From assembly GCA_009103225.1 (NCBI GenBank), contig RHPI01000249.1:21999-28990 (forward strand): a DNA stretch of 6,992 nucleotides, given 5' to 3'. Of this stretch, positions 617 through 6,992 are shown in pieces; the first letter of the stretch is position 1, and the number at the start of each line of letters is the position of its first letter. Source of the stretch: Chlorokybus atmophyticus (Eukaryota > Plantae > Mesostigma and Chlorokybus algae). The notes beneath the pieces were generated by a model, which worked only from the letters and a program-made list of their open reading frames with translations, was not told the DNA's origin and made no database searches. Position numbers and translations under genes: made by a program.

Positions 617-1099
617 GGTTCAGGTTCATCTCCCACCACACGATCTCCCAAGAAACACGCGTCATTGGAGACGGCTGCGGCTGTCCGCGTGGGCGTGCAG
701 AGCATGTTGGGGTGGAGCGCATCCATGCACAACTTCAACGCTGAGAGTTGTTGTGGTTGTGTTGTTGAATTGGAGCGTGAAACGATAAGTGGTGATGCGA
801 TATGTGACGCAGTTGAAGGTTGCGTGTCTGTTAGCTGATGCTAGCTCACGCTGGCGCTGAGCCTGCCTTGATGGTGTGTTGCATGCGCTGTGCATGTGTT
901 GGGATGCCTCGCACAAGTGCAAACGCATGCATGCACACATGTGCACACAATCTGTAGTAGTAGCATACAGCCTGTTGTCACCTGATTGACATGTTGGTGT
1001 TAGTTAGTAGTTGCAATAGTCCTGTAGTCAGTGACCATGGCTATGTGTTCATCAATGTTCTCAACCAGCCCGACCTTAACATCCTCAACACATGCCAGC

Positions 1100-4000
1100 T
1101 CAATTCAACTCGTCGAGAAGGCGGATGGCTCCCTCCTCGCGAATCAGGCGCTTTGCGTCATTGTCCAATGCAACATTGCCAAGTGCGCGTGCAGCCCAGG
1201 CCTTGCCTTTGTCCGTGCCGGATGTGAGCAGCGCGACCAACGGGGGTATGCCACTCGCCTCGCGGATAAGGCGATTTGCGTCAAAGTTTAATGCAACTGT
1301 GCCCAGTGCGTATGCAGCCCAGTCCTTGCCGTCGTCCGTGCCGGATGTGAGCAGCGCGACCAATGGGGGTATGCCACTCGCCTCGCGGATCAGGCGCTCT
1401 GCGTCATTATCAAATGCAACTGTGCCCAGTGCGTATGCAGCCCAGGCCTTGCCTTTGTCCGTGCCGGATGTGAGCAGCGCGATCAGTGGGGGTATGCCAC
1501 CCTCCTCGAGAATCAGGCGCTCTGCGTCATCGTCAAGTGCAACATTTCCTAGTGCGCGTGCAGCCCAGGCCTTGCCGTCGTTCGTGCCGGATGTGAGCAG
1601 CGCGACCAACGGGGGTATGCCACTCGCCTCGCGGATCAGGCGCTTTGCGTCCTTATCAAATGCAACATTGCCCAGTGCGTGTGCAGCCCAGGCCTTGCCG
1701 TCGTCCGTGCCGGATGTGAGCAGCGCGACCAGCGGGGGTATGCCACCCTCCTCGCGAATCAGGCGCTTTGCGTCATCGTCACGTGCAACATTGCCCAGTG
1801 CGCGTGCAGCCCAGGCCTTGCCGTCGTCCGTGCCGGATGTGAGCAGCGCGACCAATGGGGGTATGCCACGCGCCTCGCGGATCAGGCGCTTGGCGTCCTT
1901 ATCAAATGCAACATTGCCCAGTGCGTGTGCAGCCCAGGCCTTGCCGTCGTCCGTGCTGGATGTGAGCAGCCCGACCAGCGGGGGTATGCCACCCTCCTCG
2001 CGAAGCAGGCGCTTTGCGTCATCGTCACGTGCAACATTGCCAAGTGCGCGTGCAGCCCAGGCCTTGCCGTCGTCCGTGCCGGATGTGAGCAGCGCGACCA
2101 ACGGGGGTATGCCACTCGCCTCGCGGATCAGGCGCTTTGCGTCATCGTCAAATGCAACATTGCCCAGTGCGTGTGCAGCCCAGGCCTTGCCGTCGTCCGT
2201 GCCGGATGTGAGCAGCGCGACCAACGGGGGTATGCCACTCGCCTCGCGGATCAGGCGCTTTGCGTCATTATCAGATGCAACAATGCCAAGTGCGCGTGCA
2301 GCCCAGGCCTTGCCTTTGTCCGTGCCGGATGTGAGCAGCGCGACCAATGGGGGTATGCCACGCGCCTCGCGGATCAGGCGCTTGGCGTCCTTATCAAATG
2401 CAACATTGCCCAGTGCGTGTGCAGCCCAGGCCTTGCCGTCGTCCGTGCTGGATGTGAGCAGCCCGACCAGCGGGGGTATGCCACCCTCCTCGCGAAGCAG
2501 GCGCTTTGCGTCATCGTCACGTGCAACATTGCCAAGTGCGCGTGCAGCCCAGGCCTTGCCGTCGTCCGTGCCGGATGTGAGCAGCGCGACCAATGGGGGT
2601 ATGCCACGCGCCTCGCGGATCAGGCGCTTGGCGTCCTTATCAAATGCAACATTGCCCAGTGCGTGTGCAGCCCAGGCCTTGCCGTCGTCCGTGCTGGATG
2701 TGAGCAGCCCGACCAGCGGGGGTATGCCACCCTCCTCGCGAAGCAGGCGCTTTGCGTCATCGTCACGTGCAACATTGCCAAGTGCGCGTGCAGCCCAGGC
2801 CTTGCCGTCGTCCGTGCCGGATGTGAGCAGCGCGACCAATGGGGGTATGCCACGCGCCTCGCGGATCAGGCGCTTGGCGTCCTTATCAAATGCAACATTG
2901 CCCAGTGCGTGTGCAGCCCAGGCCTTGCCGTCGTCCGTGCTGGATGTGAGCAGCCCGACCAGCGGGGGTATGCCACCCTCCTCGCGAAGCAGGCGCTTTG
3001 CGTCATCGTCACGTGCAACATTGCCAAGTGCGCGTGCAGCCCAGGCCTTGCCGTCGTCCGTGCCGGATGTGAGCAGCGCGACCAATGGGGGTATGCCACG
3101 CGCCTCGCGGATCAGGCGCTTGGCGTCCTTATCAAATGCAACATTGCCCAGTGCGTGTGCAGCCCAGGCCTTGCCGTCGTCCGTGCTGGATGTGAGCAGC
3201 CCGACCAGCGGGGGTATGCCACCCTCCTCGCGAAGCAGGCGCTTTGCGTCATCGTCACGTGCAACATTGCCAAGTGCGCGTGCAGCCCAGGCCTTGCCGT
3301 CGTCCGTGCCGGATGTGAGCAGCGCGACCAACGGGGGTATGCCACTCGCCTCGCGGATCAGGCGCTTTGCGTCCTTATCAAATGCAACATTGCCCAGTGC
3401 GTGTGCAGCCCAGGCCTTGCCGTCGTCCGTGCTGGATGTGAGCAGCGCGACCAGCGGGGGTATGCCACCCTCCTCGCGAATCAGGCGCTTTGCGTCATCG
3501 TCACGTGCAACATTGCCCAGTGCGCGTGCAGCCCAGGCCTTGCCGTCGTCCGTGCCGGATGTGAGCAGCGCGACCAACGGGGGTATGCCACGCGCCTCGC
3601 GGATCAGGCGCTTTGCGTCATTATCAGATGCAACATTGCCAAGTGCGCGTGCAGCCCAGGCCTTGCCGTCGTCCGTGCCGGATGTGAGCAGCGCGACCAA
3701 CGGGGGTATGCCACTCGCCTCGCGGATCAGGCGCTTTACGTCATTATCAGATGCAACAATGCCAAGTGCGCGTGCAGCCCAGGCCTTGCCTTTGTCCGTG
3801 CCGGATGTGAGCAGCGCGACCAGCGGGGGTATGCCACCCGCCTCGCGGATCAGGCGCTTTGCGTCATCGTCACATGCAACATTGCCCAGTGCGTGTGCAG
3901 CCCAGGCCTTGCCGCCGTCCGTGCCGGATGTGAGCAACGCGACCAGTGGGGGTATGCCACCCTCCTCGAGAATCAGGCGCTCTGCGTCATCGTCAACTGC

Positions 4001-5187
4001 AACATTGCCTAGTGCGCGTGCAGCCCAGGCCTTGCCGTCGTTCGTGCCGGATGTGAGCAGCGCGACCAACGGGGGTATGCCACCGGCCTTGCGAATCAAC
4101 ACTCTCGAATTTACACCTTCCTGGACTGACCGCGCCAATTCCGACAACGCCCGAGCGGCTTGCTCCTTGACGTTGTTTGCGCCACCTCTGACCAGTGCAA
4201 TCAGCTGTGGAATCGCCCCAGCCAGGACAATGCCCACTGCACTACAAGAGTCCTCACCGAGCAGGTCCGCCAATGCTCCCGCCGCAACCTCTTTGCTGTT
4301 GGGCGTGCCGTGGTGGAGTGTGTCGACAAAGTCCATTATCCTATTGTTGACACCTTCAATTGGCACAGCTTCAACAGGCTCTTCACTTGCGGATAGCCTC
4401 ATGAGATAACTATCCAGATGTTGCAGTATGGATGAGAGAATGTCATTGGGGCGTTGTTCGACAGCCAGTCGCAGCAGGTCCAGTTGTTGCTGCAGAGCGC
4501 GACGCCCCTCGTCAGACTGCGCGACGCCAAGCAGACCGGCAGCCGCTAAGTTGCTGGCAGAGCGCAGCTTCAGCTCCTCGAGTAGCGTCTTCACAAAGCT
4601 ATCAATGCCTTGCGATTGGCAAATGCACTCCAACCAGTAGTGCATGCTGTTGATGTCGCCTATGCATGCATCCACCCGCATGGAGCCATCCAATACGTGT
4701 TGCTCGTTGCGTCCTGCCAACCCTAGGATAAGTAACATAGCCATGTGCACGGATCCAGACCCAGTACTGGCCAGGTATATAAGCAATGAACACATAACCA
4801 TGACGCCAACAAGCATACCAGAAGTCGCTGCGAGTGGAGGCTGCCCAGTGAGGCCCTCCGTTGCTGGAGCACGAATCTCCCCCGCCAACGATCCCATGTT
4901 TACTTCGTCAGTATCCGAGATTGAGCCTGGTTCCGACCGCCGTCCGTGGCTCAGGTCCTAAGATGCAGGTAGGGTGCAATCAGCATCTTGTAAAAACCAG
5001 GCATGAAGGCTGTACTTAGACACAATAGCGATTAGGGCCGGGCTGAGATTGCACCAAGGTGGGGTTTGGTGGGTATGTTGAAGAAACGCACCTGCTCCTG
5101 AAGTTGCGGCTGTGGTTGAAGAATTTGGGCATTGTGCTGACTTGAGAATTGCAGATTCATGAGGAAAGGATGCTGCGACATGACACA

Positions 5188-5218
<31 letters not shown>

Positions 5219-6814
5219 GAGAGACAGTCAGAAGAAACCTCGAGTCATGCCAACCTGTAATGGCAACCTGTGTTTGGCACCTGTAGCAACTCCTCAGCCG
5301 TTGGGCGCTCTTGAGGATTGCTGCACAATGTGGCAAAGTGAGCACCCGCAAGAAAGATGCACGATCACAAAAAGATTGATTCAAACATGATTCCAACGTC
5401 TGACCGCCTGAAGCAACGCTGAAGAAAGTCCTTGCACTCTGGTGACAGATGCTCTGGAATCTCGGGACAGTCATCTTCGCTGAAGATGCGTTTCCCAATA
5501 GCATAAAAATTCAACTGTTGCAAGCGTGTCCATAAGAACATGCAACCCGACAAGATGGAGAGATACAGCAGAGGGACGTCACTTACCCCGCTACGGTTAA
5601 CTCCTTGATACGAAGGAGGATTCCCAGTAGCCATCTCTATCACCGTGCAGCCTATACTCCAAATGTCCGCCCGGCAGTCAGCTCCGACTTGTCGGAGCAC
5701 CTCCGGCGCCATGAATGGCACTGTGCCCAGTAGTGTCCTATGTTTCACTTGCGAGTTCTGCACAGGCGCCAGCGCACAACACACTGATGAGAACTTGGGG
5801 ATTGAGCGTTGTGGTTGTTGAACGAACCGACACTGACAAATGAGCTTTGCAAAGACAATGATAATCAGACATACACGTGCAGGACTTACCACGGCCTTGG
5901 AAGCGCCAAAATCAGCAAGCTTGATGACAGTACCATTCCACTGCTTGTCCAGCAATATGTTCGCGCCTTTGATGTCGCGATGCATGATATTCACCCCATG
6001 CATGCAATTCACTGCCTCCAACAGTAGCCGCGTATATCTTTGGACAGCCTGCACGTGCGTAGTCAGAGGCGACACCAACGTGCACTAAGCCTTGCCATGA
6101 ACCCACCGTTTCATCAAAGCCTGATGGGTGGAAGGTTCTCAGCTCCTTCTCGATAGATCCAGCTGGAAGGTACTCCATCACAATGTGAAGAAAGTCACCT
6201 GCCTCCTTCCACCCGTAGTAACGCTGGCACACCAATCGTAAGACAACATGTTAGCACTGTTGGCATCAAGAACCCTGCAACGGCATGATTCGGCCAACAC
6301 TGACTAAGTCATGGTATGCTGATTTGACAGGGGTGACAGGAAGTACTGATGTACAGAGCAGCAGGTGCGACAAGGAAGCAGCATACCACAATGTTGGGAT
6401 GCATGATCTCGCTTAGAGTGTTGACCTCTCGTTTCGCTGCTTCCAGCGCCTCGCGCTCTCTGCTACCTCGCTCGTTGGCTGGACCAATGTAAATCTGGTA
6501 CAGCAACACCATTGAATATGCGCATCGTCATGCATGATGTGCGCGGCGCAGCAAAATGATGATGTTAACGTGACGACATGTCATATCACTCACCAGCTTT
6601 ACCGCTAGAACACTCCCATTCCCTTGCCTAACCTTCACCACTGTACCGCACGCTCCAATCCCTATGACTTCTTCGCTTCCCACAATGTCGTACTCGGGTA
6701 GCTCCTGCGGCGCTGTCACACAATCAGGGGAGTTGCTTATCAGAGTGGCCACGCGCGCGAAAGTACCTCTCGATTAGGGGTCATGGAGGTCAAGCCAGGG
6801 TCAACAGGGAGCAT
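1100..6814 (-). CDS. Spliced gene: STE11/MEKK (MAP3K)-like Ser/Thr kinase fused to a C-terminal array of 24 near-identical Armadillo repeats (~1,560-1,600 aa)
   Basis: Hand-built exons (minus strand): 6814-6767, 6704-6594, 6494-6387, 6223-6107, 6048-5890, 5757-5587, 5514-5405, 5320-5281, 5172-5092, 4957-4819, 4722-1100 (stop TGA 1102-1100). All introns are GT..AG, 58-163 nt, and the exons join in frame to give all kinase subdomains in order, then the long ARM frame. The start is uncertain: there are in-frame ATGs at 6814 and 6784, and the frame is open further upstream. The last intron (4818-4723) is optional because it is in frame and stop-free. Confidence 0.85.
1130..4081 (-). repeat. Coding tandem array of 24 x 123-bp (41-aa) Armadillo repeats
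   Basis: The GGCATACCCCC (GIPP) motif recurs every 123 bp from 4081 to 1252, with no indels. Consensus GIPPLVALLTSGTDDGKAWAARALGNVAxDxDAKRLIREx(G/S/R) matches the ARM pattern (G-x-I-P-x-L-V-x-L-L ... A-x-x-A-L-x-N-x-A). Confidence 0.95.
2360..3343 (-). repeat. Higher-order 246-bp (two-ARM) tandem repeat, four copies
   Basis: Units 7-14 alternate between two types with identical amino acids. The off-frame 77-aa ORFs at 2374, 2620, 2866 and 3112 are spaced 246 bp apart. A fifth copy lies at 1868-2113. Confidence 0.9.
4082..4342 (-). other. Two diverged Armadillo repeats preceding the homogeneous array
   Basis: RIMDFVDTLHHGTPNSKEVAAGALADLLGEDSCSAVGIVLAG (4342-4217) and AIPQLIALVRGGANNVKEQAARALSELARSVQEGVNSRVLIRKAG (4216-4082) align to the unit consensus but are far more divergent. 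Confidence 0.75.
5092..5172 (-). CDS. Exon 9: kinase C-terminus (HPFL) and Gln-rich linker
   Basis: Acceptor TCGCAG|CAT; HPFLMNLQFSSQHNAQILQPQPQLQEQ; donor GTGCGT at 5091. The next acceptor TCTTAG|GAC at 4958 is exactly 60 nt, in frame, before the ATG at 4897 of the long ORF. Confidence 0.8.
5183..5217 (+). repeat. (AC)n/(GCAC)n microsatellite inside intron 8
   Basis: acacacac followed by about 6.75 copies of gcac; lies just upstream (on the gene strand) of the acceptor at 5173. Confidence 0.9.
5281..5320 (-). CDS. Kinase exon 8 (40 nt, missed by the ORF track): subdomain XI
   Basis: Acceptor GTGCAG|C completes the Arg codon, then NPQERPTAEELLQ (canonical xDPxxRPTAxELL motif); donor GTGCCA at 5280. 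Confidence 0.88.
5405..5514 (-). CDS. Kinase exon 7: subdomains X-XI
   Basis: Acceptor CAACAG|TTG; LNFYAIGKRIFSEDDCPEIPEHLSPECKDFLQRCFR plus CG; phase-2 donor GTCAGA at 5404. Confidence 0.82.
5587..5757 (-). CDS. Kinase exon 6: activation segment, APE, subdomain IX
   Basis: Acceptor GTGCAG|AAC; NSQVKHRTLLGTVPFMAPEVLRQVGADCRADIWSIGCTVIEMATGNPPSYQGVNRSG; donor GTAAGT at 5586. DIWSxGCTVIEMATG is a MAP3K-like signature. Confidence 0.88.
5890..6048 (-). CDS. Kinase exon 5: catalytic loop and DFG (subdomains VI-VII)
   Basis: Acceptor GTGCAG|GCT with CTGAC branch-like motif upstream; AVQRYTRLLLEAVNCMHGVNIMHRDIKGANILLDKQWNGTVIKLADFGASKAV; donor GTAAGT at 5889. HRDIKGANIL is typical of STE11/MEKK-type kinases. 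Confidence 0.92.
6107..6223 (-). CDS. Kinase exon 4: hinge (subdomain V)
   Basis: Acceptor TGCCAG|CGT; RYYGWKEAGDFLHIVMEYLPAGSIEKELRTFHPSGFDET; donor GTGGGT at 6106. Confidence 0.88.
6387..6494 (-). CDS. Kinase exon 3: alphaC and HPNIV (subdomains III-IV)
   Basis: Acceptor TACCAG|ATT; IYIGPANERGSREREALEAAKREVNTLSEIMHPNIV; donor GTATGC at 6386. Confidence 0.88.
6594..6704 (-). CDS. Kinase exon 2: subdomains I-II
   Basis: ELPEYDIVGSEEVIGIGACGTVVKVRQGNGSVLAVKL contains the GxGxxG loop and the AVK lysine. Followed by donor GTGAGT at 6593. Confidence 0.85.
6767..6814 (-). CDS. Putative exon 1 (MLPVDPGLTSMTPNRE)
   Basis: In-frame ATGs at 6814 and 6784. Donor GAG|GTACTT at 6766 and acceptor CCGCAG ending at 6705 give a 62-nt phase-0 intron that joins to ELPEYD. 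Confidence 0.55.
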
Positions 6815-6923
6815 GCGCACTACCGGCGACCCTCCTTGCCCTTGAGCTGCGAGTGTCTGTGGGGGACTGCACGCATGCTCGAACGCGCCAAGCAGCACCT
6901 AGCATGCCAACGACAGTGCCATT

Positions 6924-6992
6924 AGAGGGGGAGAGAGAGGGAGAGAGAGAGGGAGAGAGAGGGAGAGAGAGAGAGAGGGAGGGAGAGAGAGA
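6924..6992 (+). repeat. Pure-purine (GA)n/(GGGA) microsatellite
   Basis: Seen directly; only G and A from 6924 to the window end. Confidence 0.95.

Follow-up and report, generated by a model that had tools for sequence, protein, structure and literature searches.

Armadillo repeats with a homogenised scaffold and variable groove residues in a kinase gene of the alga Chlorokybus atmophyticus

Introduction

When the units of a long tandem array are nearly identical, do the few residues in which they still differ lie on a ligand-binding surface, and has selection taken part in their variation? This question is raised by a gene of the streptophyte alga Chlorokybus atmophyticus, the only one in the stretch of 6,992 nucleotides analyzed here (contig RHPI01000249.1, positions 21,999 to 28,990; "the window" in what follows). 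It lies on the minus strand and encodes a protein kinase followed by an array of 24 armadillo (ARM) units. An earlier note on this DNA had proposed that the differences between units sit in the armadillo groove, that they arose by diversifying selection, and that they form a code with one word per repeat, as in the repeat-variable diresidues (RVDs) of TALE proteins. Our analysis leads us to propose, with a probability of roughly 0.6, that the array is the C-terminal armadillo solenoid of the Chlorokybus kinase, in which a homogenised scaffold carries groove residues that were selected or kept, and that it binds an extended stretch of a partner.

The tandem array and its units

Tandem Repeats Finder detected a period of 123 bp with 24.1 copies at 1131-4098, and the minus-strand open reading frame (ORF) 4897..1100 matched the Pfam Arm family (PF00514) with an E value of 9.6e-149, in 19 stretches that cover the full profile positions 1-41. 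Repeat finding, translation, and the Pfam match together define 24 tandem in-frame units of 41 codons (123 bp) each at 1130..4081 of the minus strand. We kept the unit register of the earlier note, in which unit 1 begins at 4081 and unit 24 stops at 1130. The mean pairwise identity between units was 91.3% for DNA and 85.6% for protein over 984 residues, and 24 of the 41 columns were invariant at the protein level.

Only 17 distinct DNA sequences were found among the 24 units, which are thus not independent samples. Units 8, 10, 12, 14, and 18 are identical to each other, as are units 9, 11, and 13 and units 7 and 17. Comparison of the units showed that the core of the array (units 7-14 in the GG register; 2363..3346, minus strand) consists of four two-unit blocks of 246 bp that differ from one another by 0 to 1 bases. 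Blocks 9-10, 11-12, and 13-14 are the same, and block 7-8 recurs as block 17-18 at a separate place. Each block joins one unit with the residues RNRD at columns 22/26/29/31 (type A) to one with HNFK (type B). Given that the two types also differ at columns 7, 12, 37, 40, and 41 and at linked synonymous sites, that is, beyond the groove columns, they are two old unit lineages amplified as pairs.

Position of the variable columns in the armadillo fold

An AlphaFold model of units 3-12, obtained with no alignment input, had a mean predicted local distance difference test score (pLDDT) of 93.9. Within the modelled unit, helix 2 (H2) spans columns 2-11 (10 residues) and helix 3 (H3) columns 14-27 (14 residues), followed by a turn (columns 28-30), helix 1 (H1; columns 31-39, 9 residues), and an H1-H2 loop made of columns 40, 41, and 1. 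A Foldseek comparison of the model gave template modeling (TM) scores of 0.81 to the designed armadillo protein 4rv1, 0.92 to ODAD2, and 0.7 to beta-catenin. The array is predicted to fold as a right-handed armadillo solenoid of stacked three-helix units, like those of solved ARM proteins.

Both in the Pfam Arm register and in the alignment to 4rv1, column 26 falls on the conserved armadillo Asn, so that the offset to standard numbering is +11 and columns 15/22/26/29/31 correspond to positions 26/33/37/40/42, the mapping that the earlier note had given. Columns 15, 22, and 26 are located on H3 at i, i+7, and i+11, on one face of the helix; the turn that follows H3 has column 29 at its centre, and H1 begins with column 31. 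A helical wheel places columns 15/22/26/29 within 60 degrees of each other, which happens for 10 of the 1820 four-column subsets of columns 14-29. The invariant Trp of column 19 (armadillo position 30) lies inside this variable stripe, across the helix from the invariant Ala, Leu, and Val residues. The placement of the variable columns on or beside the H3 groove face, rather than scattered at random, is therefore borne out by the modelled secondary structure and by the clustering on the wheel.

These positions are well known from designed armadillo proteins. There, the Asn ladder contacts alternate peptide bonds, each repeat taking up one dipeptide (PMC6838082). Exposed residues at positions 30 and 33 matter for peptide contact, and the side chains at positions 32 and 33 adopt coupled states across repeats (PMC4756613). 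The pocket of an armadillo protein is formed by helix 3 of two neighbouring repeats (PMC11228518).

Diversity of columns and words

The column entropies over the 24 units were highest at column 29 (2.18 bits), followed by columns 31 (1.70), 41 (1.53), 22 (1.31), 40 (0.98), 15 (0.89), and 26 (0.82). The five columns highlighted by the earlier note (15, 22, 26, 29, and 31) hold 6.9 of the 14.3 bits of summed entropy (48%) and do belong to the most diverse, although columns 41 and 40, which are also variable, had been omitted. Counted over the array, the residues are D19/G1/K4 at column 15, R13/H9/Y2 at column 22, N20/I2/T2 at column 26, V1/C1/S3/R7/F9/L3, from eight codons, at column 29, and D11/N5/K7/F1 at column 31. 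The residue sets listed in the note for these columns, its eight codons for column 29, and the changes for which it required two substitutions (GAC/AAA, AAT/ACA, and AAT/TTT) are all correct, as are its four-letter words (columns 22/26/29/31) for 24 of the 24 units.

Among these words, 11 are distinct, and RNRD and HNFK, with seven occurrences each, make up 14 of the 24 units. Units 5-14 and 17-20, in the middle of the array, alternate between these two, and diverse words are found at both ends. The Asn ladder of column 26 is unbroken over units 4-14 and again over units 16-21.

At Pfam Arm position 12, in the H1-H2 turn, armadillo units have a conserved Gly; the corresponding column 41 is Ser or Arg in 13 of the 24 units. 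It follows the unit type, E-G preceding type B units and A-R or A-S preceding type A units.

Other armadillo arrays

Eight further arrays, from a dinoflagellate, oomycetes, Pleodorina, two metagenome proteins, and the Chlorokybus paralog P0030, were cut in the same register, their units being extracted by ungapped anchoring on columns 1-28. The most variable columns in these arrays were, in order, 29, 22, 26, 19, 30, 31, 18, 15, and 25. Thus, in the order of variability, columns 15/22/26/29/31 take ranks 8, 2, 3, 1, and 6 of 41; for five columns drawn at random, the chance of all being within the top eight is 56 in 749,398. Since the same columns vary in other arrays, the positional pattern is generic to the armadillo subfamily and not particular to the Chlorokybus gene.

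What does distinguish the Chlorokybus array is its degree of homogenisation. Among 187 related ARM proteins with at least 4 recognisable units, it has the largest number of units (25) and also the highest internal conservation (0.84 over columns 1-31, versus 0.81 in the runner-up, which has 8 units). Armadillo arrays with an internal conservation of 0.73 to 0.81 over the same columns were also observed in P0076, P0061 (Pleodorina starrii), P0122, and P0003 (Cladocopium goreaui), so that several protist lineages have homogenised ARM arrays. Orthologs were sought in two protein searches, one with the whole ORF and the other with the linker plus units 1-4, which retrieved only the public model of the same locus and relatives with at most 50% identity. 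Selection was studied among the units themselves.

Tests of selection and gene conversion among units

The tests followed the design applied to the repeats of fungal NLR proteins (PMC4986451), with distinct units as sequences and duplicates removed, and refer to a single allele. Parsimony on a maximum likelihood tree assigned 21.5 synonymous and 40.5 nonsynonymous changes, with a nonsynonymous-to-synonymous rate ratio (omega) of 3.0 for the five columns versus 0.32 for the rest. A tree-free minimum count, taken as the minimum spanning tree over the codons seen per column, gave an omega of 3.5 for columns 15/22/26/29/31, a set chosen post hoc, versus 0.46 for the others. When the columns were instead a nine-column set defined solely from other proteins, omega was 2.2 (P = 0.0017) versus 0.45 for the rest. 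Column 29 by itself required at least six nonsynonymous steps versus 0.9 expected at the synonymous rate (P = 3.3e-4). Along similar lines, a per-site likelihood test with a synonymous rate shared across sites gave the highest nonsynonymous rate (beta) at column 29 (15; P = 3.7e-7), followed by columns 31 (6; P = 1.2e-3), 41 (4.8; P = 0.016), 15 (4.6; P = 1e-3), 26 (3.7; P = 0.05), and 22 (2.6; P = 0.08). In our view, the evidence is moderate that differences at the groove have been favoured, or shielded from homogenisation, while the rest of the unit has been conserved.

Gene conversion among the units is evident as well. All four gametes were present in 39 of 120 informative site pairs, which implies at least six exchange events (Rmin) within 123 bp. 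This breaks the single-tree model, and the tree-based omega and beta values are compromised as a result.

A number of observations weigh against selection on a ligand-binding groove. Without a tree, column 29 is the sole column that is individually significant (P about 0.014 after correction for 41 columns), and the signal of column 15 may mean that a single AAA codon was transferred repeatedly. The five columns were chosen post hoc, and their test uses one allele and leaves recombination unmodelled. In the youngest duplicates, the five columns account for only two of the seven nonsynonymous differences, and synonymous ones, among them a recurrent CCG/CCA at column 4 (a CpG site), are equally common. 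For an array from the oomycete Nothophytophthora (L001), the same analysis gave an omega of about 1 at the groove columns; with synonymous sites close to saturation, this array neither confirms nor refutes an omega above 1. On the structural side, column 41 (G/S/R), third in entropy, and column 40 (E/A) are outside the groove, in the H1-H2 loop, the Trp that importin-alpha and the designed proteins have at position 33 is replaced by R/H/Y at column 22, and the groove-facing placement of columns 29 and 31 derives from homology and helical phase, not from measured exposure. Ligand binding by the groove is itself proposed by analogy. The claim of diversifying selection made by the earlier note thus holds in part: nonsynonymous change exceeds the synonymous rate at the groove columns, but a single column survives correction in the tree-free count, gene conversion is rife, and the youngest duplicates show no strong focus on the five columns.

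Several of these observations are what would be expected from tolerated drift and amplification, in which an old two-unit dimorphism (A, R..R.D; B, H..F.K) at permissive surface positions was copied often, with no selection for diversity, and the apparent nonsynonymous excess is an artefact of small samples, post hoc choice, or gene conversion. Drift of this kind would fit the two words shared by 14 of the 24 units, the identical 246-bp blocks, and the strong recombination. It would also fit the low constraint on the same columns in other arrays, the omega of about 1 in the oomycete array, and the youngest duplicates, which differ as often synonymously and outside the five columns. Nevertheless, we consider it unlikely, for three reasons. 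Column 29 has eight codons and six residues in 17 distinct units and shows the excess of nonsynonymous steps given above; the column set taken from other proteins still yields an omega of 2.2; and values above 1 cannot be reached by relaxed constraint alone.

Proposed mechanism and alternative readings

Under the reading that we favour, of a homogenised scaffold with selected or retained groove residues, the units would have been duplicated recently, chiefly as two-unit blocks of 246 bp, and would still be exchanging sequence by gene conversion, which keeps the scaffold homogenised. The differences that remain between units would then lie mainly on the H3 groove stripe (columns 15, 22, and 26) and the H3-H1 turn (columns 29 and 31), flanked by the invariant Trp of column 19 and the near-complete Asn ladder of column 26 (20 of 24 units). 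We infer that, by analogy with importin-alpha and designed armadillo proteins, the groove could hold one or more partner proteins (a substrate, a regulator, or a foreign ligand) by an extended segment, and that gripping the partner might place or control the kinase. Selection would have favoured or retained differing pocket residues along the groove, with specificity probably set per pocket between adjacent repeats and not by one letter per repeat.

If selection on the groove is real, the array would be a natural equivalent of the modular peptide binders that have been designed from armadillo repeats. It would likewise represent an armadillo, kinase-coupled case of the "homogenised scaffold, hypervariable surface" that has so far been documented for the WD, ANK, and TPR repeats of fungal NLR proteins, and it would offer a testable handle on fast-evolving sensors in an alga that is an early-branching relative of land plants. 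If it is not, the array would be an ordinary, recently expanded armadillo tail.

A stronger version, which we regard as quite improbable, makes the array a natural, modular device that reads a long linear ligand, with the Asn/Trp ladder gripping the chain and the pockets between neighbouring units reading its side chains, as part of a rapidly re-programmable sensor kinase. The two-word core would then fit a ligand of short period, with the register set by the diverse end units. Such a reader would be the counterpart, in armadillo form, of the recognition domains that shuffle repeats in fungal NLR proteins.

The alternation of types A and B could also be a matter of structural co-adaptation, in which packing or salt bridges between neighbours (such as R29/D31 of one unit with F29/K31 and the E-G or A-R junction of the following one) serve the geometry of the solenoid and not the reading of a ligand. 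Columns 7, 12, 37, 40, and 41 do shift with the groove columns between the two types, columns 40 and 41 being in the H1-H2 loop at the unit junction, and designed armadillo proteins show coupling of the side-chain states at positions 32 and 33 across repeats (PMC4756613). The end units, however, break the alternation and place many words on the same scaffold, and the variable columns are those that contact ligands in relatives, where they are exposed, whereas the core is invariant. We find this explanation very unlikely.

We give equally little credence to a true modular code, in which each unit or pair reads defined residues of a linear ligand and the order of words spells the target in the manner of TALE RVDs. 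The near-identical scaffold with fixed hypervariable positions and the intact stretches of the Asn ladder would suit it, and modular reading is physically feasible in designed armadillo proteins (PMC6838082, PMC11228518), but no target is known, no word is tied to any ligand residue, and the periodic centre, with only about 11 words in the whole array, is low in information. Because the centre is periodic, the pockets are shared between repeats (PMC11228518), and there is no known ligand, the likeness to TALE RVDs is formal and a one-to-one rule unproven. The per-repeat code of the earlier note, whose variable positions are moreover generic to the subfamily, is not upheld in the form in which it was put.

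Comparison with known repeat systems

The best match in evolutionary terms is provided by the highly internally conserved (HIC) repeats of fungal NLR proteins, here in an armadillo type that is coupled to a kinase in a streptophyte alga. HIC repeats in the families WD, ANK, and TPR, such as those of the Podospora HNWD/HET-E/HET-D type, have at least 85% identity over at least 100 residues, evolve in concert, and are under positive selection at a few positions of the binding surface (Dyrka et al. 2014, PMC4986451). The Chlorokybus array likewise combines a high identity (85.6% for protein over 984 residues) with reshuffling of its units, and has a few hypervariable positions per repeat on the predicted binding surface with an excess of nonsynonymous change (omega of 2.2 to 3.5, from one allele). 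It differs in having armadillo repeats, in the kinase that takes the place of a NOD, NACHT, or NB-ARC domain, and in its host. Our literature search found no paper that joins the HIC phenomenon with armadillo repeats, which are unreported in PMC4986451.

In structural terms, the array resembles importin-alpha and designed armadillo repeat proteins (dArmRPs; e.g., PDB 5AEI and 5MFM), with which it shares three-helix units of 41 to 42 residues and the H3 Asn ladder (column 26, position 37). The H3 specificity positions of those proteins (26, 30, 33, 36/37, and 40) are variable in the Chlorokybus array, and its scaffold is close to consensus (39% identity and a TM score of 0.81 to 4rv1). Unlike them, it has R/H/Y and not Trp at position 33, an invariant Trp at position 30, 24 units instead of 4 to 10, and a fused kinase, and peptide binding would apply to it by analogy.

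TALE RVDs and the PUF and PPR families have in common with it long arrays of near-identical helical repeats in which a few fixed ligand-facing positions vary. The TALE, PUF, and PPR codes read one nucleic-acid base per repeat and have been proven against known targets. The Chlorokybus array differs from them in its armadillo fold, the lack of a known target, shared pockets, a centre that is periodic, and a per-unit charge close to neutral. A PUF-style reading of nucleic acids, prompted by the R/H/Y of column 22, was set aside on account of the net charge per unit (about -1 to +1) and the canonical ARM fold.

A combination of kinase and armadillo repeats is also found in oomycetes (for example, P0005 of Nothophytophthora, P0025, P0038, and P0107), where an N-terminal kinase is followed by similar units that vary at the same columns. 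Divergence among the units is greater there, with a protein identity of 69% in P0005. The array analyzed above for selection (L001:501-4508, Nothophytophthora sp. Chile5) belongs to an intronless gene that encodes a weak match to MLKL_N, a kinase, and 16 armadillo units in which the same columns vary. The kinase-plus-ARM layout also occurs in several proteins of Phytophthora and Pythium. Among plants and algae, MAP3K-epsilon is a kinase with an ARM tail.

Kinase domain and gene model

Upstream of the array, ten exons at 4817..6898 (minus strand) encode an N-terminal region and a protein kinase domain, as indicated by gene model mapping, Pfam, and structural relatives. They are located at 6898..6767, 6704..6594, 6494..6387, 6223..6107, 6048..5890, 5757..5587, 5514..5404, 5319..5281, 5172..5092, and 4957..4817, and the final exon starts near 4711, all on the minus strand. 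The exons were placed by exact-match mapping of the public model of the locus (P0001; JGI Chlat1 7328), ignoring ambiguous mapping within the repeats. The domain matched Pfam Pkinase (E = 2.3e-62), and the closest solved kinases were MAP3K2, MST3, and ASK1, with E values of about 1e-41 to 1e-42. As judged from these matches, it is a STE-group/MAP3K-like kinase, nearest to MAP3K and STE20 kinases. No NOD domain (NACHT or NB-ARC) was found in front of the array, where the protein kinase stands instead.

The public model predicts a protein of 941 amino acids with the kinase and six units only. It splices out 2250 nt (1817..4066, minus strand), equivalent to 18 units, as a GT..AG intron whose ends are a GTC codon (column 6) and an AAG codon (column 17) of the repeats. 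This in-array intron is probably an annotation artefact, and spliced alignment of collapsed transcripts is its probable source; if so, the true product would have ca. 1680 amino acids. Near its start, the long ORF has a hydrophobic stretch (4712-4816, minus strand) that is an intron in the public model (the exons end at 4817 and resume at 4711) and not a membrane helix.

In front of the array is a linker and helical region (4220..4672, minus strand) that the gene has in common with P0030 (Chlat1 338). The linker, of ca. 150 residues, is 41% identical to this paralog (E = 1e-26). The N-terminal 340 residues of P0030 contain no kinase and gave weak feature leads (0.87 to 0.91) to cephalotoxin-like and Cry-endotoxin N-terminal helical domains. 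Given that the two proteins share the linker and differ in their N termini, a linker-plus-armadillo cassette is joined to different front ends.

A degenerate 45-residue armadillo unit that resembles an N-terminal cap precedes the array (4085..4219, minus strand; from translation, with a spacing of 45), and translation of the ORF ends in a truncated 25th unit, a remnant of a C-terminal cap, with the stop codon (1100..1132, minus strand). On the plus strand, an ORF at 1092..4409 (1105 amino acids) was rejected as coding; it is a Ser/Ala/Arg-rich mirror of the repeats, and the Arm match belongs to the minus frame, which also continues the kinase gene model. Lastly, the window starts with a (CT)n microsatellite of ca. 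290 bp (1-293) and ends with a GA-rich one (6924-6992), and a (CACG)8 tract lies inside a kinase intron (5184-5217).

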